From positions 1 to 64,000 of the IMG/VR virus record IMGVR_UViG_3300027668_000008: a DNA stretch of 64,000 nucleotides. One strand, 5' to 3'. A program made the translations under genes and the position numbers. The notes under the pieces are model-generated. The model was not told where the DNA came from. It did no database searches and saw only the letters and a list, made by a program, of their open reading frames with translations. Of this stretch, positions 27,324-59,194 are shown one piece after another (position 1 is the stretch's first letter; each line of letters opens with the position of its first letter).

Positions 27324-27496
27324 TATGCCATTGCTCTACGAGAATCAGACAAATTTAATGTCGTCTTTTGTGCCATTACTTTTGGAAAACATTTCTTACA
27401 AAATTGTACAGGTATAATACCTAACTTACCAATCAATGTAGTTGGCTTGTTATGTGTGAATACTTTTGCACAAACTGAACATTTAGGTTTCTTCAC
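27323..27496 (-). CDS. 57-aa zinc-finger-like protein, not in the ORF track
   Basis: GTG start overlapping the vWA stop; CSVC...CKKC; its TAA overlaps the next ATG. Confidence 0.6.
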   Translation of the reverse strand: MKKPKCSVCAKVFTHNKPTTLIGKLGIIPVQFCKKCFPKVMAQKTTLNLSDSRRAMA

Positions 27497-44980: not shown

Positions 44981-45589
44981 TTATTTTAACTTGTATTTCT
45001 TTTGTAGATGCTTGAGTAACAGACCATATGCTGGTAAGAATATGATTAAGCCTACTGCAATTTTAATTACAACTTGTGAACCTGCAATCTCAATCCAATT
45101 TGCCGCCATATATTCATCAGCACCGTTGTTAAATGCAACTGCAAAGAATGTGTAAGTATCGATGATGTTTGCCGCCACAGTTGATACCGCAGGTGCCAAC
45201 CACCAATTGTTCTTAAATCCTTCTCTGATGTATTGGAATACATATACATCAAGTAATGTACCTACTGCGTATGCAGTAGCACTTGCAAAGCCAATTCTTA
45301 ATGCAACAGATCCTGGTGCACCTTCGGCTAGTACAACTGCTATAGATCCAATAATTGCTAACGGATATGCCGCCGCAATAGTTTGCCTTGCAATGCTTTT
45401 GCCTAGTAACCTAACAGTTAAGTCTGTTGCAATTACTACTAATGGGAACGTGAATGCCGCCCATGTTAATTTTACTCCAAATATCTCTACTGGAATACCG
45501 ACCAATGCATTTGATACTGTAATCACAATAACGTGTAGTGCTACAAGTTTCATCAACATAGTTTTGTCTACGTTCTTAAAGTTAAACAT
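44981..45589 (-). CDS. yhhQ: Queuosine-precursor transporter (YhhQ/VUT family)
   Basis: VSNAL..P....TW.AFTFP...ATDLTVR..G...AR; RIG.ASA.AY..G.LLDV.VF; DTY.FF..AF. Confidence 0.88.
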   Translation of the reverse strand: MFNFKNVDKTMLMKLVALHVIVITVSNALVGIPVEIFGVKLTWAAFTFPLVVIATDLTVRLLGKSIARQTIAAAYPLAIIGSIAVVLAEGAPGSVALRIGFASATAYAVGTLLDVYVFQYIREGFKNNWWLAPAVSTVAANIIDTYTFFAVAFNNGADEYMAANWIEIAGSQVVIKIAVGLIIFLPAYGLLLKHLQKKYKLK

Positions 45590-45630: not shown

Positions 45631-46119
45631 TTATTTGTATTCGAAATTCTGCGTGGTTGTATTAATTTCGATCAACCTTGCACCATTCTTAATATGAAAG
45701 TGTGTTGCCATTGGTGTCAATGGTGATAAAGTTACTACACGTTTAATGTGTGGTAACTCTTTTGAAATGTATTCTTTTAGTTTAAGAATAATTTCCCTTC
45801 CTGCACCTCGTTTACGAGACCATACAGTGTAGGCTATTGCTATTGTTGGGTTACTTTCTAAACTAGCCGTCTTACTCATTAGTTCCAATTCTTTTTCAGT
45901 AGTTGGTACTTCATTTGTATAGGCTATGCAAATAATTCCTTCAATAGTATCTTCGTACTTCAATCCATAAATTTTACGTCCGTAACTTGTTCTAAACTCT
46001 AAGTCTAGGTTAGGACGTACAGGATCTTCTGTTACGTCAATTTCGTGTAGCTCAACTAGTTCGGCACCTTTAACCCACCTGAAGAAGTTGTCTATTTGTC
46101 CTTTGTAATCTTTTAACAT
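45631..46119 (-). CDS. GNAT-like protein
   Basis: AYTVWSRKRGAGR; VTLSP. Confidence 0.5.
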   Translation of the reverse strand: MLKDYKGQIDNFFRWVKGAELVELHEIDVTEDPVRPNLDLEFRTSYGRKIYGLKYEDTIEGIICIAYTNEVPTTEKELELMSKTASLESNPTIAIAYTVWSRKRGAGREIILKLKEYISKELPHIKRVVTLSPLTPMATHFHIKNGARLIEINTTTQNFEYK

Positions 46120-46355: not shown

Positions 46356-46673
46356 CTATCCTCCGAAATAATGTTGAAATAGTCCTGCGACTAATAATGT
46401 TGTTAATGTTGCGTTTAGCATAGTAAGGGCTCTGTCATGCCAAAGCATACCTACCCAAAACCATCCTACTGTTCCTATTAAACTAAACCATAAGTCTATA
46501 AGAGGTATTGTACCTACACTTCTAGCCGCAACGGCAGTTAGTATAAAAAAACTTGCCGCCCACTTAATGTACCACGACAAGTCTCCTTTAGGTGTAATCT
46601 TTTTGAAGACTCTAGAGCTATTAAGTTTTGCTATTTTATCGTCAAGTTTTTCTTTAATCGGTTCTATTGTCAT
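46356..46673 (-). CDS. Three-TM small membrane protein
   Basis: W..VGMLWHDRAL..LN; paralog of 58219-58455. Confidence 0.65.
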   Translation of the reverse strand: MTIEPIKEKLDDKIAKLNSSRVFKKITPKGDLSWYIKWAASFFILTAVAARSVGTIPLIDLWFSLIGTVGWFWVGMLWHDRALTMLNATLTTLLVAGLFQHYFGG

Positions 46674-47136: not shown

Positions 47137-47823
47137 CTATCTAGGAGCAAACTCCTGTTGTAGTTTAATGTTATCGAAGAACTCTTGCTTTGTACCAGCG
47201 TCATTTGTAAATGCACCTTTAAGTACTGTAGTTTGTGTTAAACTACTGTGTGCCATAATGCCACGATTCTCACAACAACCATGTGTTGCTTGAATGTAAA
47301 CACCCACGTCTTCACTTCCAGTTGCATTCATAATTTCTCTAGCGATATTATTACAAAGTTCTTCTTGCAGTGTGCCACGTCTTGCACACCACTGAGCTAT
47401 ACGAGTGTATTTGCTCAACCCAATCAATTTCTCTGCCGCAAGTATTCCTATGTATGCGACACCAGTTACTGGTTGGTGGTGATGAGAACAGACACTTTTA
47501 AGTTCACTACGAACCACCAAAATACCTGTGTATGCATCTGCCATCTCTTGTGGAAATGCAGTTGCATTAGGCTTTGGAAAATAGCGTCCACTCATCAATT
47601 CGTTAATATACATTTTAGCAAGACGTCTACCAGTGTCGTTACTGTTAGGATCATTTTCTCTATCAATAAGCAAACTATCTAGTACACTACTGAACTTAGG
47701 TGTAAGTTCTTCGATTAGTTTCTCAGTATCACCATCTTCAAGATACTTGCTAATGTTATCTCCAGCCCAATAACGTCCTTTATCAGCCTGGATTCTTTTT
47801 TTAATTTCTTCACTTATACTCAT
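47137..47823 (-). CDS. folE: GTP cyclohydrolase I
   Basis: T..RLAKMY; SVCSHHHQP; GLSKY.RI; QE.L; HGC...RG. Confidence 0.95.
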   Translation of the reverse strand: MSISEEIKKRIQADKGRYWAGDNISKYLEDGDTEKLIEELTPKFSSVLDSLLIDRENDPNSNDTGRRLAKMYINELMSGRYFPKPNATAFPQEMADAYTGILVVRSELKSVCSHHHQPVTGVAYIGILAAEKLIGLSKYTRIAQWCARRGTLQEELCNNIAREIMNATGSEDVGVYIQATHGCCENRGIMAHSSLTQTTVLKGAFTNDAGTKQEFFDNIKLQQEFAPR

Positions 47824-47892: not shown

Positions 47893-48096
47893 TCAACCAA
47901 AATATTTGTTCAACATTTCAAGTCTGTCGTCAGCGGTAGCCATTTTATCTAATTCTTTTTGAACAGTTTCGATAATATCACTATGTTCACCGATGCCTAC
48001 CACAGATTGCATATATACTTCAATATTGGCTTTATGCAAATCTACTTCTGCTTCGGCGTGTTTCTTAGCCGCATTAATTATTATTTGTTTCAACAT
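47893..48096 (-). CDS. Small hypothetical protein
   Basis: H.ANIEVY....VGIGEHSDI. Confidence 0.65.
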   Translation of the reverse strand: MLKQIIINAAKKHAEAEVDLHKANIEVYMQSVVGIGEHSDIIETVQKELDKMATADDRLEMLNKYFG

Positions 48097-48448
48097 AACT
48101 TCCTTTCCTGTAATTGCCCTTCTCAGGTATAACGTGTCTTACGCCACCCCTTGGGTCTTCCATATCGCCTTTACGTCTTGGGATTAAATGTACATGAGGG
48201 TATTCAATAGTTTGTCCTGCTTCTGCTCCAACATTTTGTCCAATGTTATAAGCATCACAGTAACCATCTTTTACCCAACCATATCCCCAATTATAAGCGG
48301 CTTTATAGCATTTTTCTAAAGATGACCATTCGAGTAATTTAGGAACAAATAAGATATGTCCTTCTGTTACAGGGTAAGCATCTCTAAAGACTGTAAAATC
48401 TCGTGTATCAATTATTACGTCTGTCCATGGAATATCTTTAAATTCCAT
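48074..48448 (-). CDS. HIT-family nucleotide hydrolase
   Basis: DAYPVTEGH.LFVPK; GQT..YPHVHLIPRR.GD; likely ATG at 48448. Confidence 0.88.
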   Translation of the reverse strand: MEFKDIPWTDVIIDTRDFTVFRDAYPVTEGHILFVPKLLEWSSLEKCYKAAYNWGYGWVKDGYCDAYNIGQNVGAEAGQTIEYPHVHLIPRRKGDMEDPRGGVRHVIPEKGNYRKGSYVETNNN

Positions 48449-49532
48449 CGACACTAGCCTTGATAGCCTGATACAATTTGGTACCATCAAAGAAGTCTTT
48501 AAGTCGTTCTTTTAGTAAGTTGTTTGTTTCAACATACTTGTCATAGTTCTCAATCATATCAATAATCTTGTCTACGACTTCAGTAGGACTCTTTTCAAAA
48601 CCTTTTAAATTAACTGTTAAAGCACTTGCATATTTGAATTCATCTGGATACATTTCAAAGTAACTTAATCTATTAGGTACTAATGGTAATGTATCAACTA
48701 AACTACCTTCGTAAGCACTGATACCTAATGTTTCTTGCAAGTTAGCACTAAACACAATCTTTGCTTTACCGAGTAGTTCGTGGTATTCGTCTTTGCTTAA
48801 CTGCTTATCCTGACATACAATAAATTCATAGTCTGGTAATAGTTCTTTTAGTTTAGCAAAGATCTCTGGATTCTTCTCAGGTGCTACTCTGTGCGGAAAC
48901 AATATAATGTTTTCTTTTTTAGCACCAGCAAACGGTTGCAGTGTATCTGTTAGATACTCCATGGGCCAACCAACAATCTGCATCTTACCTACTTCTAAAT
49001 TCTGATCAATATCCTTTGTATCAGTTAAGAAACTTTGTGCAAACAAGTCTACATGGAATCGTGTAGCAAAGTAATTATGGTCATAACATTCGAACATACT
49101 TGCTTCTGCGTAACGTACCCAAGGTTTAGCACCAATCAATCTTCCTAAGAAGTCTGCTGGATCATAACTACCGGCGTGCCACATACCACCAATTTTAATA
49201 TTGATACCTAGTAGTTCTGCCATATACTTTAACTGTATTACTGTAGGGTTCCATGCATCAGTGTACAAGAAGTAATCGCCGTCTTTAACTTTACCACTTG
49301 CAACTAGTTCAGCAATTTGCAACATCTGTTGACTTTTGTAACTGTTAGTTCCTGCAAAGTTTAAAAATGCACCAGGTGTAGTAGTCTGTGGAACATCTCC
49401 ACCACTAATAACTTCTACGTTATAATCCTCTGTACCAAAGTACTCAGACATTTGTTTAGGTAAATGTTTCTTCCACTGAGCCGTGTAACGTGTTTCGACT
49501 GGCTCTAAGTCTACTATATATACTGTTTTCAT
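48438..49532 (-). CDS. GT-B fold glycosyltransferase (GT4-like)
   Basis: FPHR.APEK; QETLGISAYEG (E-x7-E); VPNRLSY.EM; likely ATG at 49532. Confidence 0.8.
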   Translation of the reverse strand: MKTVYIVDLEPVETRYTAQWKKHLPKQMSEYFGTEDYNVEVISGGDVPQTTTPGAFLNFAGTNSYKSQQMLQIAELVASGKVKDGDYFLYTDAWNPTVIQLKYMAELLGINIKIGGMWHAGSYDPADFLGRLIGAKPWVRYAEASMFECYDHNYFATRFHVDLFAQSFLTDTKDIDQNLEVGKMQIVGWPMEYLTDTLQPFAGAKKENIILFPHRVAPEKNPEIFAKLKELLPDYEFIVCQDKQLSKDEYHELLGKAKIVFSANLQETLGISAYEGSLVDTLPLVPNRLSYFEMYPDEFKYASALTVNLKGFEKSPTEVVDKIIDMIENYDKYVETNNLLKERLKDFFDGTKLYQAIKASVDGI

Positions 49533-49539
49533 TTTTATC

Positions 49540-49920
49540 CTATTCATGTTCTCCACCAGGATCATTTGGATCTAGTGGAACTTTTTGAGCAATACCATTC
49601 TTATCACGGAATATAATAGAACCTCTACCTCTACCGTAAGAATGATATCCATTTTTAAATTTAAACGCATTTGGAATTTTTTCTGCTACTCTAAATGTGG
49701 CAACGGTAACAACTACTGCTCCTACAAATAATGCGTGTCCGATTGCACTATACATAAAAACCCATATGTTGTTGACAATAATGATTGCAAATACAGTTGA
49801 CCACATAAATGCGAGTATTTGCATCACCATATGTCTAACTTGTAAATCGGGAATAGCTCTTAATGGATTCTTGTTATGATCCATAATAGTATTCCACGAT
49901 TCAAAGATAAATTCTCTCAT
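49540..49920 (-). CDS. Two-TM membrane hypothetical protein
   Basis: NPL..IPD..VRHM.MQILA.MW. Confidence 0.6.
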   Translation of the reverse strand: MREFIFESWNTIMDHNKNPLRAIPDLQVRHMVMQILAFMWSTVFAIIIVNNIWVFMYSAIGHALFVGAVVVTVATFRVAEKIPNAFKFKNGYHSYGRGRGSIIFRDKNGIAQKVPLDPNDPGGEHE

Positions 49921-50138
49921 TACTTCCGGATTACCCTCCCTTGAGATCTCATAGCCTTGCCATCTCTAATCCATTGATTATAAGGACGGCGCTTGTTAGC
50001 AATGCTTTTCTGCATATGCCCCCATGGGCTGTTGTTTCGACCAAGGTCTGCTTCGTTAAACGGATATCCGTTATCGACGCAAAACCGCTTATATTGATCC
50101 AGTCGATCAAATAGTTGCTCCGTGTTGCTGAGCTTCAT
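49920..50138 (-). CDS. Small hypothetical protein
   Basis: FCVDNGYPFNEADL. Confidence 0.6.
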   Translation of the reverse strand: MKLSNTEQLFDRLDQYKRFCVDNGYPFNEADLGRNNSPWGHMQKSIANKRRPYNQWIRDGKAMRSQGRVIRK

Positions 50139-50143
50139 TTTTC

Positions 50144-50605
50144 TTAATTCCTTGTATACTCATATTTCGCTAAAGATCCGTTTTCCCCGTCCTCACTTAC
50201 TTCAATTTCTACAGTACGTTCAGGGTAACGGGATTGTATCATGCCAAATAAATCATCAGACATCATTTCACAAGATTTGTAATCTAACTCTAATGTTTTT
50301 TCTGCATATAATTTTTCAAGCCAACGTTTGAATTGAATAAATTCAATATCTCTGTCGTCGTGGAATACTTCTATTGCCACTTTAAAATGAAAAATATGTC
50401 TATGAGGATAGCCTAAAAAACTAACATCATATTCATCTCCTGTTGCTAGTTTAGGATCATCTAATGCGGCAGGGTATTTGTGTATACCTTCCTTCTTAAA
50501 TGTAACCCAGATCATTTTACTAGCGGATTCAATTTGCTTTTTTTGTGCGTCTTGTATAGCCGCCGCTCTCATGTCGCTAATCATATCGTCTATGTATCTT
50601 CCCAT
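50144..50605 (-). CDS. QueD-paralog T-fold protein, DpdL-like (predicted CDG decarboxylase)
   Basis: LGYPHRHIF (LxxxHRHxF); DRDIEF; SCEM; VSEDGENG; lacks the QueD catalytic Cys motif; promoter TTGACA-N17-TATAAT at 50625-50653. Confidence 0.65.
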   Translation of the reverse strand: MGRYIDDMISDMRAAAIQDAQKKQIESASKMIWVTFKKEGIHKYPAALDDPKLATGDEYDVSFLGYPHRHIFHFKVAIEVFHDDRDIEFIQFKRWLEKLYAEKTLELDYKSCEMMSDDLFGMIQSRYPERTVEIEVSEDGENGSLAKYEYTRN

Positions 50606-50649
50606 TGTTGTTACTTTCTATATTATTATAGTATAGTTGTTTTCGAATG

Positions 50650-50823
50650 TCAAGACTTACTTTTAGCAATTTGCTCTTTAATGTGTAATTTTTTTAGTTT
50701 TAAAGCAATCAAATCTTCTTTGCCTCTCCAACCTCGGTCGCCTTCACGGAGTTTTTCTGCGTCCGCTACTTGTTTTTTAAGTGCCTTATGTTCTTTGCGT
50801 AGTTCATCAGTTGTTGCTATCAT
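50650..50823 (-). CDS. 57-aa DUF465/YdcH-like coiled-coil protein, not in the ORF track
   Basis: L.KEH..L...V....LKLKKL.IKEQI; AGGAGG RBS. Confidence 0.6.
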   Translation of the reverse strand: MIATTDELRKEHKALKKQVADAEKLREGDRGWRGKEDLIALKLKKLHIKEQIAKSKS

Positions 50824-50840
50824 ATTATACCCTCCTAAGG

Positions 50841-51386
50841 TTATTCAATAAATGTGTCGCCAACGTACTTGTCCCAATCTGAAAATGTTTTACGATTAAT
50901 AACATCTTCCATAGGAACACACCATACACCAGGATTTGTGGCATTAAAGTCTGTGTCATCAAACTTTATAGTTGTATTATGGTTCCATTGTTGCCAATAG
51001 CCAAGTTTTAGACTTTGCATAGGAATGAAGCGTCTATCTTCAACCCAACCCATTTCTAAAATATCTTTACCATATTCCATTAGATCAAAATCTAATGTAA
51101 CCCATAAGTCTGCTTTAAGCAATCCTGAGATGTAATTATTCCAATCAGTCCAGTCACCGTTTGTTACTGGTTTAAATGTTGTGCCTGTGCCTAAATAGAT
51201 GTGTTTAATATCATGATTGGTTGCGTGTTCAATAGTTCTATTTAAGTCTTGTATACCGCATACAAACAATGTCTTTTCACCGTACATAGGAGTCTTTTCA
51301 ACTTCTTTGTTCATAAAGAACTTTGCTTTATCAGTTGTAACTTCGCCACCTTTTAGTGTAGCATACGTTCGCATCATTTGTTTCAT
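50841..51386 (-). CDS. Hypothetical protein in the deazaguanine cluster
   Basis: EVEKTPMYGEKTLFV; HIYLG; IKFDDTDF.ATNPGVWC. Confidence 0.65.
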   Translation of the reverse strand: MKQMMRTYATLKGGEVTTDKAKFFMNKEVEKTPMYGEKTLFVCGIQDLNRTIEHATNHDIKHIYLGTGTTFKPVTNGDWTDWNNYISGLLKADLWVTLDFDLMEYGKDILEMGWVEDRRFIPMQSLKLGYWQQWNHNTTIKFDDTDFNATNPGVWCVPMEDVINRKTFSDWDKYVGDTFIE

Positions 51387-52373
51387 CTATTTACTCTCTG
51401 TTTCGTCAACTATACGTTGAGCTCTGGTTTTTTCATACAGTTTGTACATATGCTTATTCCAAGTAATGTAGCCTCTACTGTATCCTTCTGGACGATTGTT
51501 GCCGTCAACAAATGCTTGTTCCCATTCCATATCTCTATCATAACTTTTTGTCCAAAAGCCATCTATGTTTAAGATACCTGTACTAATTAAGGAAACTGCA
51601 TCTCCCATACTACTATGAAAGTTTGGGTTTCTAGGACTTGGAAAGTCCATACTTGCATTTTTCCATAACAAGTTACCAAATGTAGTAGTAATTCCTTTTT
51701 TCTCTGCCGCTAGTATAATCAATGCATTCTCATTAATTATATCGCCATCAAATACAAGTGTGCTATCATCTTTCAAATCTATCACTACATCATACTTGCC
51801 GTTAGGTTCTGATATTAATCTATCTTCCCAAAACTTTCTATTATGAGAACCTAGCACATCAACATCATCTGCTAAACGTAATACTTTTAATTTTGTGTAA
51901 ACAACTGTTGCTAAAAAGCCACTGCCTATAATTAAAATACGTTGTCGTTGTCCTTTAAACTTTGCCATACCTGACATATAGTTTAACTTGTCTAAGTTAC
52001 TTGTAACTATATTAATACCACAAGCCACAGGCTCTATAATGTATTTAGGATCAGCATCTGGCACAACTACATATTCGTTATGTCTAACGTTGTAATAATC
52101 TGCATATGCAGGTTCACCTCTAGTAGCAACAATGTCGCCTACCTTAGTGTCTGTAATCTCTTTACCAATTTTTGTAACTTGACCTAGTCCTTCATGTCCT
52201 TGCATATTTAAAGGCAATGGACCAAAGTTACCATTCATCATATCAATGTCACTACGACAAATGCCAGTCATTAAAGCCATAACTTCAATTTCTTCATTTC
52301 CTACATTAGGTTTGTTCCATTCGATTTCTTCGAACTTTCCATTGCCTGTTGTTTGTAATAGTTTTACTAGCAT
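51387..52373 (-). CDS. Medium-chain (Zn-dependent) alcohol/polyol dehydrogenase-like protein
   Basis: GICRSD; GHEGLG.V..IG; VGDIV; IEPVAC; IIGSG. Confidence 0.82.
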   Translation of the reverse strand: MLVKLLQTTGNGKFEEIEWNKPNVGNEEIEVMALMTGICRSDIDMMNGNFGPLPLNMQGHEGLGQVTKIGKEITDTKVGDIVATRGEPAYADYYNVRHNEYVVVPDADPKYIIEPVACGINIVTSNLDKLNYMSGMAKFKGQRQRILIIGSGFLATVVYTKLKVLRLADDVDVLGSHNRKFWEDRLISEPNGKYDVVIDLKDDSTLVFDGDIINENALIILAAEKKGITTTFGNLLWKNASMDFPSPRNPNFHSSMGDAVSLISTGILNIDGFWTKSYDRDMEWEQAFVDGNNRPEGYSRGYITWNKHMYKLYEKTRAQRIVDETESK

Positions 52374-53242
52374 AGTTCTTCCATTTGTTTATGTATCCAC
52401 ATATCCTTTGTAAATTGATCTTCCCAATATTCATTATTATGCAGGTTTTCTAGTCCAATGTCAATCATTCTTTTGTATGCTTCTTCAGGACATAAGCCTA
52501 ATTCTACACGTTCTATATGACCAAGTATTTCAAAGTTAATCCCGACATCATCGTATAAGTCTGTTTTCCAATTAGCGAGTAAGTTGTATTGACAAAACTT
52601 TGTCTTATATCCCATACCTGCTTCATCATCTACATCATATACTCCATCGGGATCAACTGTGCCATAATCTGTATCAAGTAATCCTTTAAGATCCCAATTA
52701 GTTCTTGCTATTTTATCTGATGGAAGAGTATTAGCATAACTAGGATTGAATACTTGATAAAGGCTTAACAAGTGTGGAAGTAAATCTCTACTTACTCCGC
52801 CATATGCTAATTCTTTTGTTGTAAACCAACTACCCGGATTAGGTACTCTGTTTTTGTTTTGCCAATGAATGTCAACTACACGACTTGTTCTTGCCATATT
52901 AATAAGTTCATCTATGTTGTGTCTAAACTGATTATTCTTTACCATAGATATTCTACACTCTGGAAAGTCATAGTGCAAATCTGACCATGCTTTCGAAGTA
53001 GATAATCCAGGCTTTTCAATAAACATTAAATGACACCAGGGAGCGATAAACCTTGCAAGTTCTTCGTGGGTTTCATTTGGCGTACAGATATGTACAGTGT
53101 CGTACATATCAATTGGTACATCTTGAATAGTCTTAAAATCAGCAGGTCTATTTGGGTCAACTGTTACAACATCGATACCCATTTCTGTTAGTACCTTCAT
53201 GTATAGTTGCCCAATACCCATACCTACTATAAGACTTTTCAT
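52367..53242 (-). CDS. Gfo/Idh/MocA-family NAD(P) oxidoreductase
   Basis: IVGMGIG; ICTPN.TH; FIEKP; GGV.RDL.PH. Confidence 0.85.
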   Translation of the reverse strand: MKSLIVGMGIGQLYMKVLTEMGIDVVTVDPNRPADFKTIQDVPIDMYDTVHICTPNETHEELARFIAPWCHLMFIEKPGLSTSKAWSDLHYDFPECRISMVKNNQFRHNIDELINMARTSRVVDIHWQNKNRVPNPGSWFTTKELAYGGVSRDLLPHLLSLYQVFNPSYANTLPSDKIARTNWDLKGLLDTDYGTVDPDGVYDVDDEAGMGYKTKFCQYNLLANWKTDLYDDVGINFEILGHIERVELGLCPEEAYKRMIDIGLENLHNNEYWEDQFTKDMWIHKQMEELC

Positions 53243-54706
53243 TTATACCTCAAACAAACTGTTAAATTGTGCAGAACTGTTAATAGTTTTCTTACCAACT
53301 GCTCCACGTGTTCCAACGACCTTCATCCATAGTTTAGTGTGTTCATCTACTAATGCAAGTGCTTGGTCTTTGTTATCAAGTTCAAATATTCTAGCAATAA
53401 CATCTTTAACTTCTTGTTTATCGAATGTATCGTTAACAAGCATATTAGGATAGTTACCACCGTCATACTGTCTATTTGCTTCTTGTACACTATTAATGTG
53501 TGTATATACATTATGGTTCATCATAAGTGCATATGCAAACGAATCCCAACTAGTTTTAGTCGATACACCCATTCTATTAACATCTGTTGGACTGTAAATA
53601 CAAACGTCATTTACTTTTAGTCCTTGTGTAATAGGAGTAGGCATCCAGTTCATTCCTTGTTTATTAAAGAAGTCTGTTGCTAAATCATCGTAGGGTCTAG
53701 TGTCAGTACTATATGCTTTGTCATCTGGTGCCGGCGACATCATATAACTCCACTTTTCATCTTGTACTGTTCTATGTCCTGTATAGACTTGACCATTTGC
53801 AGTACATAAGAACGGACTTGCACAATCAAATGTTACTGTGAAGTTCTCATTATGGTTCTTACGAATACCACGTTGTATTGCAGTTAGTACTAGTGCCCAT
53901 TCAAGTTTACTAGTTCCTAAGAAGTGCATAACATCTTGTTTACCTTTTTCAAGTAAACCGTCAAACCTTAGTTCAATTACACGTTTCAATGCTAGATGCA
54001 AGTCGCACATATTCTGTCCGCCCATTGCCCAACCGTTAAAATGTGTATCTGGGTACAATCGGTGATCACTGTACTTCTTCATTTGCTGATACCAATCATC
54101 GGCTTGTGCAAAGTTTTCACCTTGTAGTACATTTAAGAACTTACAGTTACCATTACGGTTTTTAATAAAGTATTCGTTATTAAATTGTGTGCCTTCAACT
54201 GCTTCTTGATATGAACTAATTTTACTTTTTTCTGCACCTTCAGGACTACGTCCTACCCATGCCGGAATATCTAAAATCATTCCATAGTCCATGAACTTGT
54301 CCATCCACTTTAGAACACCATCACGTTTCTTTTGTGCTTGAGCACAACCGCTATTTGCTCTCCAGTCACCTTCCCACTTGCCTTTACCAATTTGGAAACC
54401 ACCTGAGTCTCCTAGTAACCAACTGTGTTCTCGGTTCCTGTCTCTGTACATATCTTCACGATACATATCCTTTTCCAAGTCTAGACTGGCATGACCAGCC
54501 GAGTGCAATGACCATTTGTATTTCCATAGACCTTCTGGTGCCAACCAGTTCATACTTTCAACACCGTGTGGAAGAAAACTAGGAACACGATTATAATCAA
54601 TATATTCGTGCCTACGTTGTCTGCCTACAAAGAGTGCGTAGAATGTACTTAATGCTGGCAGAAATACTGCGTAGTCATTTTGTGCATCTGTAAGGTTAGT
54701 CTTCAT
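53243..54706 (-). CDS. dpdA: Guanine transglycosylase (TGT fold), DpdA-like
   Basis: LGDSGGFQ; MILDIP; LNVLQG; AMGG; HFLG; TFDCAS; no CxCxxC Zn site as in tRNA TGTs. Confidence 0.72.
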   Translation of the reverse strand: MKTNLTDAQNDYAVFLPALSTFYALFVGRQRRHEYIDYNRVPSFLPHGVESMNWLAPEGLWKYKWSLHSAGHASLDLEKDMYREDMYRDRNREHSWLLGDSGGFQIGKGKWEGDWRANSGCAQAQKKRDGVLKWMDKFMDYGMILDIPAWVGRSPEGAEKSKISSYQEAVEGTQFNNEYFIKNRNGNCKFLNVLQGENFAQADDWYQQMKKYSDHRLYPDTHFNGWAMGGQNMCDLHLALKRVIELRFDGLLEKGKQDVMHFLGTSKLEWALVLTAIQRGIRKNHNENFTVTFDCASPFLCTANGQVYTGHRTVQDEKWSYMMSPAPDDKAYSTDTRPYDDLATDFFNKQGMNWMPTPITQGLKVNDVCIYSPTDVNRMGVSTKTSWDSFAYALMMNHNVYTHINSVQEANRQYDGGNYPNMLVNDTFDKQEVKDVIARIFELDNKDQALALVDEHTKLWMKVVGTRGAVGKKTINSSAQFNSLFEV

Positions 54707-54717
54707 TGACTTCCCCT

Positions 54718-55449
54718 TTATTTAGATTGTGCTGGAAGGATATAATCGTATTGAATCTGTCCAGAATCAACTGAAATCATACTAGCACCCTCATCAGAGA
54801 ATCGCATAGTAATTTCACCTGGGAGGCTCAAAATACTAATTACTTGGTTAATGGGCCACTGCCAACCGTGCTTCAACGAACCAGTAATATCTGGTTGGAA
54901 TACAAAGTTACCTGCGTGTGTGCTATGGTCACCAAAGTAAAACTTTAAGTTGCCATCTTCTGTTCTAGCGATGAAAGTTGTTTCTTCACTATGCACTTGT
55001 GCCTGCATTTTTAAACGTTGTACTGCCGCCATACTTGGCTTAATTTCAACGTCCCACTTAACACCCTTAAACTTTACAGTTTTAAGTTTGTCGTTAATTA
55101 CTTCACTTGTCATAAAGCGATAGTCGTTCTTAAAGTCGCCCCTAACATTTTCAAAGTATAACCCAACTGGAACATCTGTTCCGTTGCGTTCTTGTTTGCT
55201 AATTGTAATCTTAGCATCTGCTTTATACTCTTGAATACCAAGTAGTATTGCTAATTTACTTAAATTAGGCATACCGAACGTACCCATAAACTCTGCGTAC
55301 GGCGATTTAAATTTGGCTTGTACGATAACACTTCTGTCATCTGCAAGTCCTTCTAGTGTTGTTGCAACATCACTACCTTCAATTTTTACCAAGTCAATAA
55401 AGCCTAGGCTGTGTGTATGCTGAACAATATCGTTTAGATAGTCTTTCAT
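54718..55449 (-). CDS. Probable DNA sliding clamp (gp45-like)
   Basis: Size about 243 aa, two-domain beta/alpha pattern, directly downstream of the polymerase; GGAG RBS before ATG 55449. Confidence 0.55.
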   Translation of the reverse strand: MKDYLNDIVQHTHSLGFIDLVKIEGSDVATTLEGLADDRSVIVQAKFKSPYAEFMGTFGMPNLSKLAILLGIQEYKADAKITISKQERNGTDVPVGLYFENVRGDFKNDYRFMTSEVINDKLKTVKFKGVKWDVEIKPSMAAVQRLKMQAQVHSEETTFIARTEDGNLKFYFGDHSTHAGNFVFQPDITGSLKHGWQWPINQVISILSLPGEITMRFSDEGASMISVDSGQIQYDYILPAQSK

Positions 55450-55514
55450 AGATTTATTCTCCATCAGTTAATAATACAATTATATGTGTATTTAGGTTCA
55501 AAGTCAAGTTCTTT

Positions 55515-58172
55515 TTATTCAAAACTAAACAAATCATTAAATTTAGTGTTAGTATTGGAATCTAGCGTCAAGTCCCACCCCAATACGTCTAATAGGTTGT
55601 TAATCTTACTGTCAATTACAGTGCTTTCCATTGCACTATCATCAAACGGTAATTCTTTAAACCATTGTGGCAAATGCGGTTCATCAACTGGATAAGCCAC
55701 ACTAGTGTATCCTAGTGGATTTGCCTTCATTTTACAAACAATAACTTTGTGACCGTCTTTGATCTCGGTACTATATCTGTCACTGTTCATCTTTCGCAAT
55801 CTATTCCAGTTCATACTAGCTCTGACGTGTCCTGGCATATTTGCTCTTCCTTGCCGCTGTTCAAGTGCTTGGAATTTTGTCATGTTATTTGCACGTCTTG
55901 GGCTACCTTTTTCCCAACCTTGCTTTTGCATGAATTCTTCTTTAAACAACTTTACTTTCTCAAGTGCAGTATCTCTATCATCGCCAGTTAACACTCCTGT
56001 TAAGATGTTACTAAGAAAGTCTTGTACAATCTTAGGTGTATCTGACCGTTTAAGGTCAAGTCCCATTGCTTTAATCTTTCCCGGACTGTCTTTATCTGTG
56101 CGATATCCTTCGTTGTCGTATATAAGTAATGCATAACGTTTCTTTGTAATAAACAAACCTTTGGTTGCACATACTTCTCTACCACCAACAATAATCTCTC
56201 CATTTTCCCTAGGTGCATTAAAAGCCTTCTTCATAAAGCCTGGAAAACTTTCGTTAACTTTGTCGCTAATAGAATCATATAAAGCAGTACAAGTATCTTT
56301 GTTCCACTCTAATTCACCTTTCTCAACACGTTCTTTAAGAACGGGCCATGCACTAAAGTATGCAGAGTCTGTGTCACCATATATAATAGTTTCACCTCTA
56401 TGATCATACACGCCTGTTAAACATTCATTAACATATGCGTCCATGTGTTTTGCAATACTTCTGCCACACAATGTAGTACTTTGTCCAATACGTTTATCAA
56501 AGAATCTACAACCTGGATTAAGAATCGCACCATATAAACTGTTCAAGTTAATCTTTTTAACTAACTGTCGTTTATCCCAAAACTGTTTCTCTTCCGGAGT
56601 TGTTGCACTTGCTTTTACTTTTTGTATATCTTGTCGTTCTCTGTACCAACGTGCTAATAGTCCAGGTACAACACCTTCTATTTGCGAATTAAATATAGTA
56701 CCATTTGCACTTAACATCCAAGGTTTTTTACTTAAAAATATAAGTTTATAGATCTCTTTACCAGACATTATATCATGCGAACCGTTTTCCCATTCAAGTA
56801 CAATTTCTTTTTCGATGTCTTGTGACATAACTAGTTCATATTCGATACTACCAAACATACCTTCCCAAGAATCTGCAAAACTCTTCTTGTCAGCCATGCT
56901 ATCTTTAACGTGTCGGTCTGTGTAGTCCGGACGCAACTGTCCTACAATAGTTTCATTTCCCATGTTAAGAGCACGAATAGCCGAAGGATACAAACTGTTA
57001 ATATCAATACTACCAATCCAATCATGCAATCCTTTTTGTGGGTATGCCACATACGCACCAGCCGCCTGTGTGTTACCAAGTTCATCTCTACTCTTACGAC
57101 TTGGAACAACTAACCCACGTTCGTGTGCTTCGTTAATAATTGCTTGTTCTGTAACTGCGACAGCACCCATTGTTGTTTGTAACAACACTGTATTACTGTG
57201 TGCTAGTTCACTACTCAACTCCATAAATTTTAATTTCTTATCTAGTTTATCTAGTAGTGCAGTATCCTGTCTCGAATATTCAATAAACGTTTCAAAGTCA
57301 TTGTTATATAATTGATCCAGTGTGCCTGTGTATTGAACTTTGCGTTCATCTAATTCATATTCACCAATAGCATCTAAACTGTAACTATGCATTTCGTGGT
57401 ATGTATACTTACGATACAGTTGCATATAGTCCATGTGTACACGACCAATAGTATCAAACGTTAGTGTTTCACTACCAAATCGTTCAAACGTTCTCGACTT
57501 GGGTAATGCACCCCATAAACAAAAACGTCTTGTATCATCTTTACTCAGTACACGTTTAACTCTGTTTACCAAATACGGAATATCATAACCTTCACTGTTC
57601 CAACCAGATAAAATATCTGCATCATCAATAAGTGTTAAGAATGTATCTAGTAATTGCGACTCTTGTTCAAAGAAGAAACAGTTTTCATACTTTGCACAAA
57701 CCTTATCGCTTTCTTCCTTACTCATTCCTTTAGGCGGAATTGCAAGTGTTATAAGTTGATCAGTCCATTGTAAGTACAAACTAATTGCAGTTACAGGATT
57801 AAACGGATCCTCAGGCGGAGAGAAACCTCGTTCCTTATCGAAGTCAGTCTCAATATCAAAGAAACAAGTGTGCAACTTAGGTGCTTCTTGTCCTAGATAG
57901 TTTTCTTCTAAAATACGGAATACAGGATTAAAGTCGCTTTCATAAAGTCGCTTTTGTCCTACTAGTTTTATTTCTCTACGGAAATCTTTTATCGAACGGC
58001 ACTGGATTCTACTAACAGTGTTGCCGTGGATACTTTTATGTTTACCTTTCGGATCATCATAATAGAATACATATTTTGCGGGATAATCTTTATACACACG
58101 TTTACCGTGCTTATTTCGTTCGACTATTTGTATTAAGTCCTTGTCTCTATCAAAGAGTGCATCAACGTACAT
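55515..58172 (-). CDS. Family B DNA polymerase (T4 gp43-like)
   Basis: FFDIETD, WNSEGYD, YSRQD (3'-5' exonuclease); DINSLYPS, KINLNSLYG, YGDTDS (polymerase). Confidence 0.97.
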   Translation of the reverse strand: MYVDALFDRDKDLIQIVERNKHGKRVYKDYPAKYVFYYDDPKGKHKSIHGNTVSRIQCRSIKDFRREIKLVGQKRLYESDFNPVFRILEENYLGQEAPKLHTCFFDIETDFDKERGFSPPEDPFNPVTAISLYLQWTDQLITLAIPPKGMSKEESDKVCAKYENCFFFEQESQLLDTFLTLIDDADILSGWNSEGYDIPYLVNRVKRVLSKDDTRRFCLWGALPKSRTFERFGSETLTFDTIGRVHMDYMQLYRKYTYHEMHSYSLDAIGEYELDERKVQYTGTLDQLYNNDFETFIEYSRQDTALLDKLDKKLKFMELSSELAHSNTVLLQTTMGAVAVTEQAIINEAHERGLVVPSRKSRDELGNTQAAGAYVAYPQKGLHDWIGSIDINSLYPSAIRALNMGNETIVGQLRPDYTDRHVKDSMADKKSFADSWEGMFGSIEYELVMSQDIEKEIVLEWENGSHDIMSGKEIYKLIFLSKKPWMLSANGTIFNSQIEGVVPGLLARWYRERQDIQKVKASATTPEEKQFWDKRQLVKKINLNSLYGAILNPGCRFFDKRIGQSTTLCGRSIAKHMDAYVNECLTGVYDHRGETIIYGDTDSAYFSAWPVLKERVEKGELEWNKDTCTALYDSISDKVNESFPGFMKKAFNAPRENGEIIVGGREVCATKGLFITKKRYALLIYDNEGYRTDKDSPGKIKAMGLDLKRSDTPKIVQDFLSNILTGVLTGDDRDTALEKVKLFKEEFMQKQGWEKGSPRRANNMTKFQALEQRQGRANMPGHVRASMNWNRLRKMNSDRYSTEIKDGHKVIVCKMKANPLGYTSVAYPVDEPHLPQWFKELPFDDSAMESTVIDSKINNLLDVLGWDLTLDSNTNTKFNDLFSFE

Positions 58173-58218: not shown

Positions 58219-58455
58219 CTACTGAGCGATTAAACTTTGTATAATTCCAATTATGTATATTAAAGTAAGTCCTGCGTTTAATACAATCAAACTCTTTTCT
58301 TTCCATAATACACCTACCACTACCCAGATAGCATTTGCCAAACAAAATGCATAACTGTAGTACGGATACATATTGAAACTTGCCATAGTAGCCGCGATTA
58401 GTAATATTGCAGTGCCAGTCCATGCGAGTCCTTGATATGGTTTTACTTTTTCCAT
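58219..58455 (-). CDS. Three-TM small membrane protein
   Basis: W..VGVLWKEKSLIVLN; paralog of 46356-46673. Confidence 0.65.
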   Translation of the reverse strand: MEKVKPYQGLAWTGTAILLIAATMASFNMYPYYSYAFCLANAIWVVVGVLWKEKSLIVLNAGLTLIYIIGIIQSLIAQ

Positions 58456-58643
58456 TCCATTAACTCCATCTCTACTGCATCTGCTCCTTTATTATAATGT
58501 CTTTCCACTAATTTTACAACCTTTTTAAATGTATCTGTTACTGTTTCTTTTGTTACTTTATTGCCTTTAGTAATAAGGAGGTTATAAGTAAGCAGTTCTG
58601 TGTCTTGCTCATCTGCTTTATCGTAACCTCCTATACTACTCAT
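58443..58643 (-). CDS. Small hypothetical protein
   Basis: ORF track. Confidence 0.55.
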   Translation of the reverse strand: MSSIGGYDKADEQDTELLTYNLLITKGNKVTKETVTDTFKKVVKLVERHYNKGADAVEMELMEWKK

Positions 58644-59194
58644 TATACTTTTGCTGTTTCCTTAAGAAAGGCAATAGCATTCTCTGGTGTTGTCTGTTCA
58701 TATGGATCGCTATCAGAACCGACGTTATTGATGCCGGGTTCTTCCCACCATTGTTCAATAACTCCATTATTGATAACTGCCATAAAACGCCACGAACGAT
58801 TGCCGAAGCCTACGTGAGTTTTATTAATAAGCATACCTAAACATTTAGTAAGGTCACCATTTCCGTCAGGAATAACTTTAACGTGCTTAATGTCTAATAC
58901 TTCTTTCCAAGCATTCATAACAAACGAATCGTTTACTGAACTAACATAAACATCATCGATGCCTAAGTTACGAAACTCTTCCATATTATCTTCAAACCCT
59001 GGTAGTTGTGTGCTTGTACACGTTGGTGTAAATGCCCCTGGTAAACTAAACAATACAACACGTTTATCTTTAAAGTAATCATGTGTTGTTTCTGTATGCC
59101 ATTTACCGTCTGCAAAACTGCAACCTTTTTCAAGTACAGTGTCGCCTGTTCTGACATTAAATTTTAATAGCGGGATTATTACGCCTGGTTTCAT
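58643..59194 (-). CDS. Peroxiredoxin (Prx5/redoxin type)
   Basis: LPGAFTPTCT; SVNDSFVMNAW; DGNG; RSWR. Confidence 0.92.
   Translation of the reverse strand: MKPGVIIPLLKFNVRTGDTVLEKGCSFADGKWHTETTHDYFKDKRVVLFSLPGAFTPTCTSTQLPGFEDNMEEFRNLGIDDVYVSSVNDSFVMNAWKEVLDIKHVKVIPDGNGDLTKCLGMLINKTHVGFGNRSWRFMAVINNGVIEQWWEEPGINNVGSDSDPYEQTTPENAIAFLKETAKV

Follow-up and report, generated by a model that had tools for sequence, protein, structure and literature searches.

A conserved phage 7-deazaguanine DNA module with a predicted glycosyltransferase

Does the gene cluster next to the DNA polymerase gene of a large uncultured marine phage only place a 7-deazaguanine in DNA, or would it also attach a sugar to that base? 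The window analyzed is a 64,000-nucleotide stretch (64 kb of a roughly 307-kb genome) of the IMG/VR record IMGVR_UViG_3300027668_000008. The original prediction described a dpdA-like gene followed by two sugar-type oxidoreductases, DpdL-like and GT-B glycosyltransferase (GT) genes, and folE, and read the cluster as a route to a sugar- or cyclitol-decorated 7-deazaguanine or, alternatively, as a redox route from 7-carboxy-7-deazaguanine (CDG) to a hydroxymethyl acceptor that is then glycosylated. The gene arrangement it described was confirmed in this study, whereas its interpretation was only partly supported. A sugar-decorated purine would be the first known in DNA, and no published description of such a system was found.

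Gene content of the locus

All genes listed in the original prediction lie on the minus strand in the order predicted (Table 1), with FolE just outside the interval 48074-54706 given there. The junctions of the first four genes are abutting, a 7-nt overlap, and abutting, as predicted. Co-transcription, also proposed, is plausible given the shared strand, the short gaps, and the single terminator-like site on that strand; however, a perfect sigma-70-like site sits between the oxidoreductase block and dpdL-GT.

Table 1. Features of the locus in transcription order; functions are assigned from sequence or predicted structure
Position	Strand	Size (aa)	Feature	Remark
55507-55479			Sigma-70-like site	11/12 match
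54718-55464	-	248	Homolog of a protein annotated as virion structural in PA5oct	Always immediately upstream of the DpdA-like gene
53243-54706	-	487	Divergent TGT/DpdA-like transglycosylase	Core; presumed to insert the 7-deazaguanine base into DNA
52367-53242	-	291	Gfo/Idh/MocA-family NAD(P) oxidoreductase	Accessory
51387-52373	-	328	Zn-dependent medium-chain dehydrogenase (MDR)	Accessory; always paired with the Gfo gene
50841-51386	-	181	Unknown protein (unk181)	Core
50650-50823	-	57	DUF465-like small coiled-coil protein	Variable
50653-50625			Sigma-70-like site	Perfect match
50144-50605	-	153	DpdL, QueD-like T-fold protein	Core; proposed in the literature to be a CDG decarboxylase
49920-50138	-	72	Small basic ORF (pI 10.3)	Variable
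49540-49920	-	126	Small hydrophobic, probably membrane, ORF	Variable
48438-49565	-	375	GT-B, GT4-like glycosyltransferase	Core; probable true start Met12 at 49532
48074-48490	-		HIT-family nucleotide hydrolase/transferase	Probable start Met at 48448
47893-48096	-	67	Conserved ORF (s67)	Travels with HIT
47137-47823	-		FolE (GTP cyclohydrolase I)	First step towards CDG
44981-45589	-		YhhQ/Vut_1-family transporter	Family of the preQ0/preQ1 importer
44951-44930	-		Terminator-like hairpin
39172-39660	-		Purine phosphoribosyltransferase (PRT)	In the conserved block of relatives
37389-37838	-		QueD (6-carboxytetrahydropterin synthase)
36478-37383	-		Divergent QueE-like radical SAM enzyme (CDG synthase)

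The DpdA-like protein gave no Pfam, NCBIfam or PDB sequence hit. Its assignment rests on six motifs collinear with those of E. coli TGT (DSGGFQ, (I/L)xD, xxQG, GxAxGG, xxxG(T/V) and FDC), on genomic context, and on weak profile-profile matches: hhalign returned E 5e-4 and probability 32% against a TGT profile, and probability 86% against the 424-aa DSGGLQ protein of Acidovorax phage ACP17. By profile methods, the link to TGT is statistically weak. The family comprises 1281 clusters at 50% identity. Because TGT is a tRNA enzyme, glycosylated queuosine exists in animal tRNA, and jumbo phages often carry tRNA genes, a tRNA rather than a DNA target, giving a queuosine-like and possibly glycosylated tRNA base, was considered. 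This reading is very unlikely: the window has no tRNA genes, the TGT zinc-binding CxCxxC...H segment is not conserved, all phage TGT homologs studied so far act on DNA (PMC10516641), and the DNA of the related Pseudomonas phage PA5oct resists restriction enzymes whose sites contain G (PMC12191111).

DpdL carries the sequence LGYPHRHIF, which fits the published signature LxxxHRHxF (PMC10516641), matches phrog_17812 (E 4e-34), and is 57.5% identical to ACP17 DpdL and 34.5% identical to CGPG_00067 of Cellulophaga phage phiST. Its decarboxylase activity has never been demonstrated (PMC10516641). Of the precursor enzymes, FolE (PF01227, GTP_cyclohydroI, 128 bits, E 2.6e-37) passed the Pfam threshold, and QueD matched PF01242 (E 1.4e-14) and is 46% identical to phiST QueD. 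QueE had no Pfam hit, but is 36% and 43% identical to the annotated QueE of PA5oct and of Vibrio phage 2.275.O, respectively, and shows an N-terminal IQGEG...CNLQC followed by a 38-residue spacing before CDSSYTW. No QueC, QueF, Gat or QueA was found in the window or in 2.55 Mb of 178 related loci, indicating that the pathway stops at CDG. The transporter (PF02592, E 2.3e-25) is 40% identical to its homolog in the deazaguanine cluster of Vibrio phage 2.275.O.

The GT was below the Pfam threshold for Glycos_transf_1, but its AlphaFold2 model (pLDDT 84) has a GT-B fold, with glycogen synthase, BshA and MshA as the top Foldseek PDB hits (E 4e-9 to 5e-8, TM about 0.6). The EX7E (E278-E286) and HRxxPEK motifs are invariant, and more than 8000 homologs were found. 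Among viral models, the top match was the ACP17 GT (TM 0.82-0.89). The Gfo/Idh/MocA protein was likewise below threshold (weak hits to PF01408 and PF22725); however, many homologs of about 50% identity carry PF01408, and the GxGxxG, EKP and GGxxxDxxxH motifs are invariant. Its best PDB sequence matches were DgpA, a glycoside 3-oxidase, and levoglucosan dehydrogenase (E about 0.008). The MDR protein passed the ADH_N threshold (40.3 bits) and shows the zinc-ligand motifs GICRSD, GHEG and IEPxAC and the Rossmann motif GSGFLA.

The unk181 protein had no family hit; its AlphaFold2 model (pLDDT 92) had no PDB fold match (best E 0.1). At least 7092 unannotated homologs exist, and it is homologous to ACP17 ASD50402 (probability 99.6%) and PA5oct gp364. 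The 248-aa protein had no Pfam hit and is 38% identical to PA5oct gp314, annotated "structural protein, ESI-MS/MS"; it is conserved upstream of the DpdA-like gene in related loci. HIT (PF01230, 40.6 bits) passed the Pfam threshold, matches Hint/Fhit-like PDB chains, has a PHVHLIP motif, and is conserved between the GT and FolE in most relatives; a HIT-s67 pair occurs in most loci, although s67 had no family hit. The purine PRT (PF00156; best PDB matches archaeal purine PRTs) lies between the GT and FolE in most relatives, and is annotated as xanthine-guanine PRT inside the module of cyanophage BUCT-ZZ01. The DUF465-like protein (PF04325, 22.9 bits) was just below the cutoff and is present only in some relatives. 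Neither of the other two small ORFs had a family hit; the basic one is present in a subset of relatives and the hydrophobic one in close relatives only.

Conservation of the core and its sugar genes

Synteny of the GT, the oxidoreductases and dpdA across phages, which had been proposed as a test of the interpretation, came out strongly positive. The arrangement recurs in well over a hundred related loci, far beyond chance, although the sampled loci are the best-scoring ones and include near-duplicates from different samples. In the 80 loci fetched by GT similarity, the order 248-aa protein, DpdA-like, unk181, DpdL, GT recurs wherever the contig reaches that far. In 57 complete GT-bearing IMG/VR loci, the DpdA-like protein, unk181 (56/57), DpdL (57/57) and the GT form a near-invariant core. 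In 51 of the 57, nucleotide-sugar or sugar-redox genes lie beside this core: SDR epimerase/dehydratase in 41, nucleotidyltransferase in 30, phosphomannomutase (PMM) in 12, UDP-sugar dehydrogenase in 9, Gfo-MDR in 8, and cupin in 7. In loci fetched by Gfo similarity, the Gfo-MDR pair lies within 1.5 kb downstream of the DpdA-like gene in 76/79, MDR immediately follows Gfo in at least 63/72, and the GT is downstream in 48/50.

These results favor a sugar-decorated 7-deazaguanine, but they correct the original prediction in that the GT, DpdL and unk181 are the core, the two oxidoreductases are an accessory cassette, and the sugar chemistry is variable between lineages. Since 49 of 57 GT-bearing modules lack Gfo-MDR, the oxidoreductases cannot be what creates the acceptor. 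This argues against the proposed reduction of CDG, or its DNA form, to a 7-hydroxymethyl-7-deazaguanine, an unlikely reading even though it would supply the hydroxyl group that 7-deazaguanine lacks and the MDR enzyme has intact catalytic zinc ligands typical of alcohol/aldehyde dehydrogenases. Reducing a carboxylate needs ATP-dependent activation, and no enzyme of the module was assigned to that step; moreover, the proposed decarboxylase DpdL is universal, and the nearest solved relatives of Gfo oxidize sugar hydroxyl groups. In two loci, the Gfo-MDR pair sits away from any DpdA, with a cupin (weak mannose-6-phosphate isomerase-type Pfam hits), a radical SAM protein and a 2OG oxygenase.

The GT is also adjacent to DpdL in unrelated phage groups. 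In ACP17, the order is FolE, unk181, a DSGGLQ protein, GT, DpdL and QueE; the GT is adjacent to DpdL in BUCT-ZZ01, Phosso and PA5oct as well. In the 16 cultured-phage records where both were found, the GT lies within 4 kb of DpdL. This linkage bears on the possibility that the module makes only plain 7-deazaguanine (dDG or dCDG) in DNA while the GT and sugar genes glycosylate something else, such as the adjacent virion protein, another phage protein or a host envelope molecule. In favor of it, a homolog of the 248-aa neighbor is annotated as a virion structural protein, the GT is acidic (pI 4.9), its nearest solved structures act on small molecules or glucans rather than DNA, and phiST has DpdL and plain dDG without any GT (PMC10516641). 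However, the 248-aa protein was not found in the 16-kb ACP17 locus examined, where the GT is sandwiched between the transglycosylase-like gene and DpdL, and the GT co-occurs with DpdL in 57/57 modules. This alternative is considered unlikely.

A proposed pathway to a glycosylated 7-deazaguanine

The best explanation, to which a probability of about 0.5 is assigned, is that the region is the core of a DNA hypermodification module. In this view, FolE, QueD and QueE make CDG from GTP; DpdL, probably together with unk181, converts CDG to the base that is used, most likely 7-deazaguanine as in phiST; the DpdA-like enzyme exchanges guanine in phage DNA for that base; and the GT adds a sugar from a nucleotide-sugar, either on the base already in DNA or on the free base before insertion. 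The Gfo/Idh/MocA and MDR pair of this phage would tailor the sugar by oxidizing and then reducing a secondary alcohol, giving a keto or epimerized sugar, whereas in most relatives a set of PMM, nucleotidyltransferase, SDR epimerase/dehydratase and UDP-sugar dehydrogenase would occupy that role. The purine PRT would recycle the released guanine. The product would protect DNA from restriction, with a sugar that differs between lineages. The analysis itself establishes the gene identities, the motifs, the predicted GT fold and the conserved linkage; every chemical step after CDG, the order of glycosylation and insertion, the presence of the sugar on DNA and the acceptor atom are inferred without chemical evidence. 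Because 7-deazaguanine has no hydroxyl group, a C-, N2- or O6-glycoside, or an unseen hydroxylation step, is required, and GT4 enzymes are typically retaining O-glycosyltransferases.

The sugar may instead be attached at the small-molecule level and not be retained in DNA, either as a transient handle or activating group on a CDG- or DG-derived intermediate, or in a free deazapurine glycoside with a role other than DNA modification. BshA and MshA glycosylate small molecules; a purine PRT, a HIT protein and a histidine phosphatase lie in the same conserved block; and deazapurine glycoside natural products exist (bioRxiv 10.64898/2026.04.15.718813). This is also unlikely, since a lytic phage has no evident use for a secreted metabolite, the module always contains the DNA-type transglycosylase homolog and sits in the replication gene block, and PA5oct DNA itself is modified at G (PMC12191111).

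The same parts occur in the cultured phages PA5oct, ACP17, Phosso and BUCT-ZZ01, and PA5oct and other Wroclawvirus phages are among the closest known systems. PA5oct carries homologs of PolB, the 248-aa protein, the DpdA-like protein (34% identity), the GT (45%), DpdL (56%) and QueE in the same order, and a contiguous trio of Gfo (29%), MDR (40%) and unk181 (43%); however, this trio lies 27 kb from the DpdA-GT-DpdL cluster, and PolB is split by a homing endonuclease. Besides resisting G-site restriction enzymes, PA5oct DNA is sensed by nucleases that target hypermodified DNA, and it is reported to carry a modified G that has not been identified (PMC12191111). The phiST system (DpdA3, DpdL, FolE, QueD, QueE; product dDG; Cui et al. 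2023, PMC10516641) shares the precursor genes, the absence of QueC, a DpdL with the same signature, and a TGT-superfamily enzyme that standard models do not detect. Its locus has no GT, unk181 homolog (probability 0.2%) or sugar genes, and its 259-aa DpdA3 is barely alignable with the 487-aa protein (probability 10%).

ACP17, a DpdL source in PMC10516641, and Synechococcus phage BUCT-ZZ01 are T4-like rather than PA5oct-like phages. They possess FolE, QueD and QueE and a GT of 40% and 22% identity, respectively, but their transglycosylase-like protein is of another subtype (DSGGLQ, about 420 aa) and they have no Gfo/MDR. In the published test, dpdL plus dpdA of ACP17, without the GT and unk181, gave no dDG in E. 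coli. In T4, where alpha- and beta-glucosyltransferases act on 5-hydroxymethylcytosine, and in other phages with glycosylated pyrimidines, a GT-B enzyme is likewise encoded next to base-modification genes, presumably for evasion of restriction and with sugar diversity between lineages. The acceptor there is a hydroxymethyl or hydroxyl pyrimidine; no pyrimidine hydroxymethylation genes were seen in the window, where ThyX was the only thymidylate-type enzyme found, and the T4 enzymes are not among the top viral fold matches of the GT described here, which is GT4-like with an EX7E motif.

A GT-B enzyme acting on a 7-deazaguanine-derived base has a precedent in HuiG of the huimycin/dapiramicin-type deazapurine glycosides of actinomycetes, which uses a UDP-sugar (bioRxiv 10.64898/2026.04.15.718813) and shows that such an acceptor is chemically feasible. 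Those compounds are secondary metabolites that start from preQ0 and need QueC and O-methylation; they involve no transglycosylase and are not in DNA. Sugar tailoring by Gfo/Idh/MocA enzymes also occurs in O-antigen synthesis, for example in the WbpA/WbpB/WbpE pathway (UDP-sugar 6-dehydrogenase, Gfo/Idh/MocA 3-oxidase, DegT aminotransferase). The putative partner in the present phage is a Zn-MDR dehydrogenase, not an aminotransferase; in one relative (L018), however, a Gfo/Idh/MocA enzyme is encoded about 3 kb upstream of a UDP-sugar dehydrogenase and a weak DegT-like aminotransferase hit in the same module.

Gene organization and transcription

The window has about 35% G+C, and its genes run on the minus strand from about 21.4 kb onward. 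The 291-aa Gfo gene is 100% identical to those on IMG/VR contigs of up to 306,714 bp, and the flanking ORFs recur there, indicating that the window is part of a jumbo-phage genome. Its nearest cultured relatives are the PA5oct-like Pseudomonas phages; PolB is 47% identical and many neighboring genes are shared. The PA5oct polymerase gene (PA5oct locus, 2605-7831) is split by a homing endonuclease, whereas PolB of the window is intact. A megablast search of the region against cultured phages found nothing. The gene order and the close junctions described in the original prediction are accurate: the junctions among the dpdA-like, Gfo, MDR and 181-aa genes are abutting, a 7-nt overlap and abutting.

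Features of the window, in transcription order for the minus-strand module, followed by other observations
Feature	Position	Strand	Remark
Family-B DNA polymerase (PolB)	55515-58172	-
248-aa protein	54718-55464	-
487-aa dpdA-like protein	53243-54706	-
291-aa Gfo/Idh/MocA-like protein	52367-53242	-
328-aa Zn-MDR dehydrogenase	51387-52373	-
Unknown 181-aa protein (unk181)	50841-51386	-
DUF465-like 57-aa protein	50650-50823	-
153-aa DpdL	50144-50605	-
Two small ORFs		-
375-aa glycosyltransferase (GT)	48438-49565	-
HIT protein	48074-48490	-
67-aa ORF		-
FolE	47137-47823	-
YhhQ-family membrane protein	44981-45589	-	preQ0/preQ1 transporter family; between DpdL and the GT in some relatives
Subtilase (Peptidase_S8), 999 aa	41035-44034	-	within the conserved deazaguanine block; weak, sub-threshold proline-rich (Extensin-like) match near the N-terminus; homologs at the same place in some relatives, for example locus L008
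Purine phosphoribosyltransferase (PRT)	39172-39660	-
QueD	37389-37838	-	CHLLHGY where the signature is CxxxHGH; the second zinc-ligand His is a Tyr
Divergent QueE	36478-37383	-	no Pfam hit; cluster-binding cysteines apparently CX3CX38C instead of CX3CX2C, with a long insertion before the CDSSYTW segment
Promoter-like site	55507-55479	-	upstream of the 248-aa gene
Promoter-like site	50653-50625	-	perfect 12/12 match just upstream of dpdL
Terminator-like hairpin	44951-44930	-	just downstream of the YhhQ-family gene
Perfect sigma-70-like promoter	44913-44886		follows the hairpin
Protein resembling the C-terminal domain of malonyl-CoA decarboxylase, and two DUF6552 paralogs	45631-46119, 46356-46673, 58219-58455	-	flank the module; conserved in close relatives
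ThyX, a DUF2201 metallopeptidase/VWA protein and a peroxiredoxin	24443-25111, 27496-28803, 58643-59194	-	same replication and metabolism arm
Match to an ADP-ribosyltransferase family	34810-35520	-	very weak, sub-threshold (E 0.0065, 16 bits); probably not meaningful
Radical-SAM gene array	1219-21434 and 22646-23062	+ and -, respectively	eight ORFs matching Pfam Radical_SAM and a ninth weak match at 2911-4509

The radical-SAM ORFs occur together with SufE, two NifU-type proteins, an AMP-binding enzyme and a SPASM domain; this is an unusually large array with its own Fe-S assembly genes for a phage. No QueC, QueF, Gat or QueA homolog is detectable in the window, which covers only part of the roughly 307-kb genome.

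No terminator-like hairpin was found on the minus strand between 55.5 kb and the hairpin downstream of the YhhQ-family gene. The strongest promoter-like sites lie upstream of the 248-aa gene and of dpdL, but the counts of such sites are no higher than in shuffled sequence, and this is only suggestive. The genes may form one read-through unit with an internal promoter that separates the DpdA-oxidoreductase-unk181 block from the DpdL-GT-HIT-FolE block.

Features of the encoded proteins

The dpdA-like protein gave no hit in Pfam, PHROGs, NCBIfam or the PDB, the last searched with a single sequence and with a family profile. It nevertheless carries six signature motifs of tRNA-guanine transglycosylase (TGT), namely DSGGFQ, (I/L)xD, xxQG, GxAxGG, xxxG(T/V) and FDC, in the same order and with similar spacing as E. 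coli TGT (positions 100, 144, 193, 225, 261 and 293 of the window protein against 89, 141, 185, 209, 242 and 263). These include the three catalytic or substrate-binding aspartates (DSGGFQ, ILD, and FDC with the nucleophile), and the residues are invariant in 33 family members. Profile-profile comparison by hhalign gave E 5e-4 and a probability of only 32% over 171 columns against a TGT profile, and a probability of 86% against the 424-aa DSGGLQ protein of the ACP17 deazaguanine cluster; global hhalign against TGT failed, and the comparison with phiST DpdA3 was not informative (probability 10%). The best tblastn hit of E. coli TGT in the whole window falls inside this ORF, with a weak E of 0.04. 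The zinc-binding CxCxxC...H segment of tRNA-guanine transglycosylases is not conserved; the corresponding segment has a single non-conserved Cys. A full HMMER scan of 1.84 billion representatives found 1281 clusters at 50% identity for this family, which standard models do not recognize, and did not run into the very large canonical TGT family. The protein is regarded as a TGT-superfamily enzyme of a distinct subfamily, inferred from motifs and context and not from statistics. It is encoded together with the 7-deazaguanine precursor genes FolE, QueD and QueE, with DpdL and with YhhQ, as expected for a phage DpdA.

The 153-aa protein carries LGYPHRHIF, which fits the published DpdL signature LxxxHRHxF that replaces the CxxxHGH of QueD (PMC10516641). 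It matches the two DpdL proteins used experimentally in that paper, those of ACP17 (57.5% identity, E 8e-39) and phiST (34.5%, E 9e-9). DpdL is a proposed CDG decarboxylase, an activity that has never been shown experimentally (PMC10516641), and here, as expected for DpdL, it occurs with FolE, QueD and QueE but without a QueC detectable in the window or in 178 related loci.

The GT scored only 20.7 bits against Pfam Glycos_transf_1 (cutoff 26.4), although one homolog, P0012, carries PF00534. Its AlphaFold2 model (pLDDT 84, pTM 0.85) shows a predicted two-Rossmann-domain GT-B fold: 81 PDB matches were found at E <= 0.001, and all 50 listed are GT-B enzymes. The best solved matches are retaining enzymes of the GT4/GT5 type, namely glycogen synthase, BshA and MshA. 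The EX7E motif (E278 and E286) and H225-R226...K231 are invariant; in GT4 enzymes the R/K pair binds the donor phosphate. Among predicted viral structures the best match is the ACP17 homolog (TM 0.82-0.89), whereas no T4-type DNA glucosyltransferase is among the 50 best. No hydroxymethyl-pyrimidine pathway was seen in the window; ThyX is the only thymidylate-type enzyme found there. The acidic pI of the GT (4.9) is weak evidence against DNA as the acceptor, but isoelectric point is not a discriminating proxy for DNA binding, since the DpdA-like protein is also not basic.

The Gfo-like protein has the motifs of Gfo/Idh/MocA oxidoreductases (G7-G9-G11, E76-K77-P78 and G148-G149...D153...H157, corresponding to GxGxxG, EKP and GGxxxDxxxH), which are invariant in 29 sequences. 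It scores 19.3 bits against PF01408 (cutoff 24), while many of the listed homologs of about 50% identity are recorded with PF01408. Its best, though weak, solved relatives are a glycoside 3-oxidase (DgpA) and levoglucosan dehydrogenase. The MDR protein has a GroES-like ADH_N domain (40.3 bits, cutoff 23.5), the Cys, His and Glu catalytic zinc ligands and a Rossmann motif (GICRSD, GHEG, IEPVAC and GSGFLA), with no structural-zinc four-Cys lobe and no Pfam hit for the C-terminal domain. The unk181 protein gave a very confident predicted model (pLDDT 92) but no family hit, no PDB profile hit (best E 0.08) and no fold match in the PDB, with only weak partial similarity to TIM-barrel enzymes. It has at least 7092 homologs, none annotated. 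It is not homologous to phiST CGPG_00066, to the 174-aa neighbor in BUCT-ZZ01 or to the "glycosylase" of Phosso.

Conserved linkage in related loci and cultured phages

The GT has more than 8000 homolog clusters and unk181 more than 7000, mostly in ocean metagenomes, and at least 587 IMG/VR stretches encode a relative of the GT. In the 80 best loci the order 248-aa protein, DpdA-like, unk181, DpdL, GT recurs wherever the contig reaches that far, usually followed by a purine PRT, HIT, the 67-aa ORF, FolE and QueE. Among 57 loci complete from PolB to the GT, DpdL is present in 57 and unk181 in 56. Variable genes, mostly sugar enzymes, occupy three slots. Between PolB and the 248-aa gene lie an SDR epimerase/dehydratase (41 loci), a cytidylyltransferase-like nucleotidyltransferase (30), a phosphomannomutase (12), a UDP-glucose/GDP-mannose dehydrogenase (9) and a cupin (7); between the DpdA-like gene and the GT lie the Gfo-MDR pair (8) or a class-III aminotransferase (4); and between the GT and FolE lies a 2OG-Fe(II) oxygenase (24). 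Altogether 51 of the 57 modules carry sugar-activating or sugar-tailoring genes: 43 have the nucleotide-sugar set only, 5 have Gfo-MDR only, 3 have both and 6 have neither. In 13 of the 57 loci (for example locus L073, 5054-5452), a short HhH-GPD (DNA glycosylase superfamily) protein is encoded beside the module, mostly between PolB and the 248-aa gene.

In loci fetched by the Gfo protein, the DpdA-like gene lies within 1.5 kb upstream in 76 of 79, the MDR gene follows directly in at least 63 of 72, and the GT is downstream in 48 of 50. The two exceptions place Gfo-MDR next to a cupin, a radical SAM protein and a 2OG oxygenase, with a methyltransferase gene on the opposite strand upstream, which fits a portable sugar-redox cassette. 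None of 178 related loci (2.55 Mb) has QueC, QueF, Gat, QueA or a canonical TGT. All these loci are the best-scoring ones, and several are the same phage from different samples, so the fractions describe a clade and are not independent events; shared ancestry would also confound a GT tree labeled by sugar-gene content. The synteny of GT, oxidoreductases and dpdA, which had been set as a test beforehand, is very strong.

The GT-DpdL pairing crosses phage lineages. PA5oct-like phages have PolB, the 248-aa protein, the DpdA-like protein, the GT and DpdL in order, then QueE, together with a contiguous Gfo, MDR and unk181 trio 27 kb away. ACP17, a T4-like phage, has QueD, then FolE, unk181, a DSGGLQ protein, the GT, DpdL and QueE. 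The T4-like cyanophage BUCT-ZZ01 has QueE, a PRT, QueD, FolE, a DSGGLQ protein, DpdL and the GT. The 469-kb Sinorhizobium phage Phosso has DpdL, the GT, FolE and QueE near its polymerase gene; the protein downstream of its DpdA-like gene is not a GT homolog. In Xanthomonas and Burkholderia phages the GT lies 1.5-2.8 kb from DpdL. By contrast, phiST, the one DpdL phage whose DNA has been analyzed and found to contain plain dDG, has neither the GT nor unk181 (PMC10516641). Vibrio phage 2.275.O has a DpdA-like homolog beside QueF, YhhQ, QueC, Gat and FolE; the protein downstream of it is not a GT homolog, and none of the ORFs within 9 kb of it matches the GT or DpdL. The GT therefore tracks DpdL and unk181, not a particular transglycosylase subtype.

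A possible route to a glycosylated 7-deazaguanine

PA5oct DNA resists restriction enzymes with G in their sites; a modified G was inferred but not identified (PMC12191111), and this is only indirect evidence for base exchange on DNA. Cui et al. could not obtain dDG from dpdL plus dpdA of phiST or ACP17 in E. coli, and they suggested that other enzymes may be needed (PMC10516641); the linked unk181 and GT were not included in that test. Glycosylation of a 7-deazaguanine-derived base by a glycosyltransferase has a precedent in huimycin biosynthesis (bioRxiv 10.64898/2026.04.15.718813). Literature searches for a glycosylated 7-deazaguanine in DNA, or for newer Dpd names, found nothing relevant, in a library that does not cover most subscription journals.

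The analysis itself establishes the presence of CDG synthesis genes and of DpdL, the absence of QueC within the sequence searched, intact catalytic motifs in a TGT-like enzyme, intact donor-site motifs in a GT4-like glycosyltransferase, and the conservation of these genes together with sugar-nucleotide genes. The chemistry is inferred throughout, including the decarboxylation of CDG, base exchange on DNA and DNA as the acceptor of the sugar. In the most likely mechanism, CDG is converted by DpdL, and perhaps unk181, to 7-deazaguanine or a close derivative; the TGT-like enzyme swaps it for guanine in DNA; and the GT adds a sugar. In this phage, Gfo and MDR would oxidize and then re-reduce a sugar hydroxyl group, either on the nucleotide-sugar donor or on the attached sugar, to give a lineage-specific sugar, and the purine PRT would salvage the released guanine. 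As acceptor atom, 7-deazaguanine offers C7/C8, N2 or O6, unless a hydroxylation step intervenes. Glycosylation may come before or after insertion. Eukaryotic TGT inserts the bulky base queuine, so insertion of a pre-glycosylated base is conceivable, and the acidic GT and its fold neighbors that act on small molecules lean slightly that way.

The interpretation offered in the original prediction, a sugar-decorated 7-deazaguanine, is thus partly supported: the linkage is very strong, but the chemistry is unproven. Its alternative, in which the oxidoreductases create a hydroxymethyl acceptor from CDG, is unlikely, since 49 of 57 GT-bearing modules lack those oxidoreductases. The module, which is very widespread, is assigned to the known DpdA-type 7-deazaguanine DNA modification systems, and differs from that of phiST in carrying the GT and unk181.

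In its broadest form, the hypothesis is that a very abundant group of marine, soil and clinical-host phages replaces guanine with a glycosylated 7-deazaguanine, which would be the first sugar-bearing purine in any DNA; this remains tentative, with a probability of about 0.4. The sugar would be diversified between lineages by swappable cassettes, much as O-antigens are, comprising nucleotide-sugar synthesis genes, the Gfo-MDR pair, aminotransferases, and in some loci a flavin halogenase-like enzyme or a 2OG oxygenase. In this reading unk181, with a predicted new fold, would be an essential pathway component, and the linkage might be a C- or N-glycoside on the deazapurine ring, unusual chemistry for a GT4-like enzyme. 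All eight 7-deazaguanine derivatives so far reported in phage DNA are small (PMC10516641). Glycosylated DNA bases other than pyrimidines are not known to have been described, and a glycosylated deazapurine would open a new class of DNA hypermodification. It would also explain the unidentified modified G of PA5oct, a therapeutic-candidate phage, and the failure of dpdL plus dpdA alone to give dDG in E. coli. Bulky, variable purine adducts matter for restriction and CRISPR evasion, for modification-sensing nucleases and for the sequencing of such phages, and the existence of cultured relatives on harmless hosts makes the prediction directly testable.

The module of some relatives carries an ORF of about 513 aa between MDR and unk181. 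In two of these loci (L020 and L021) it encodes a tryptophan-halogenase-family flavoenzyme, followed two genes later by a DUF6445 protein, and two others (L212 and L214) carry a 513-aa ORF at the same position. This raises the possibility of halogenation or hydroxylation of the electron-rich deazapurine ring.
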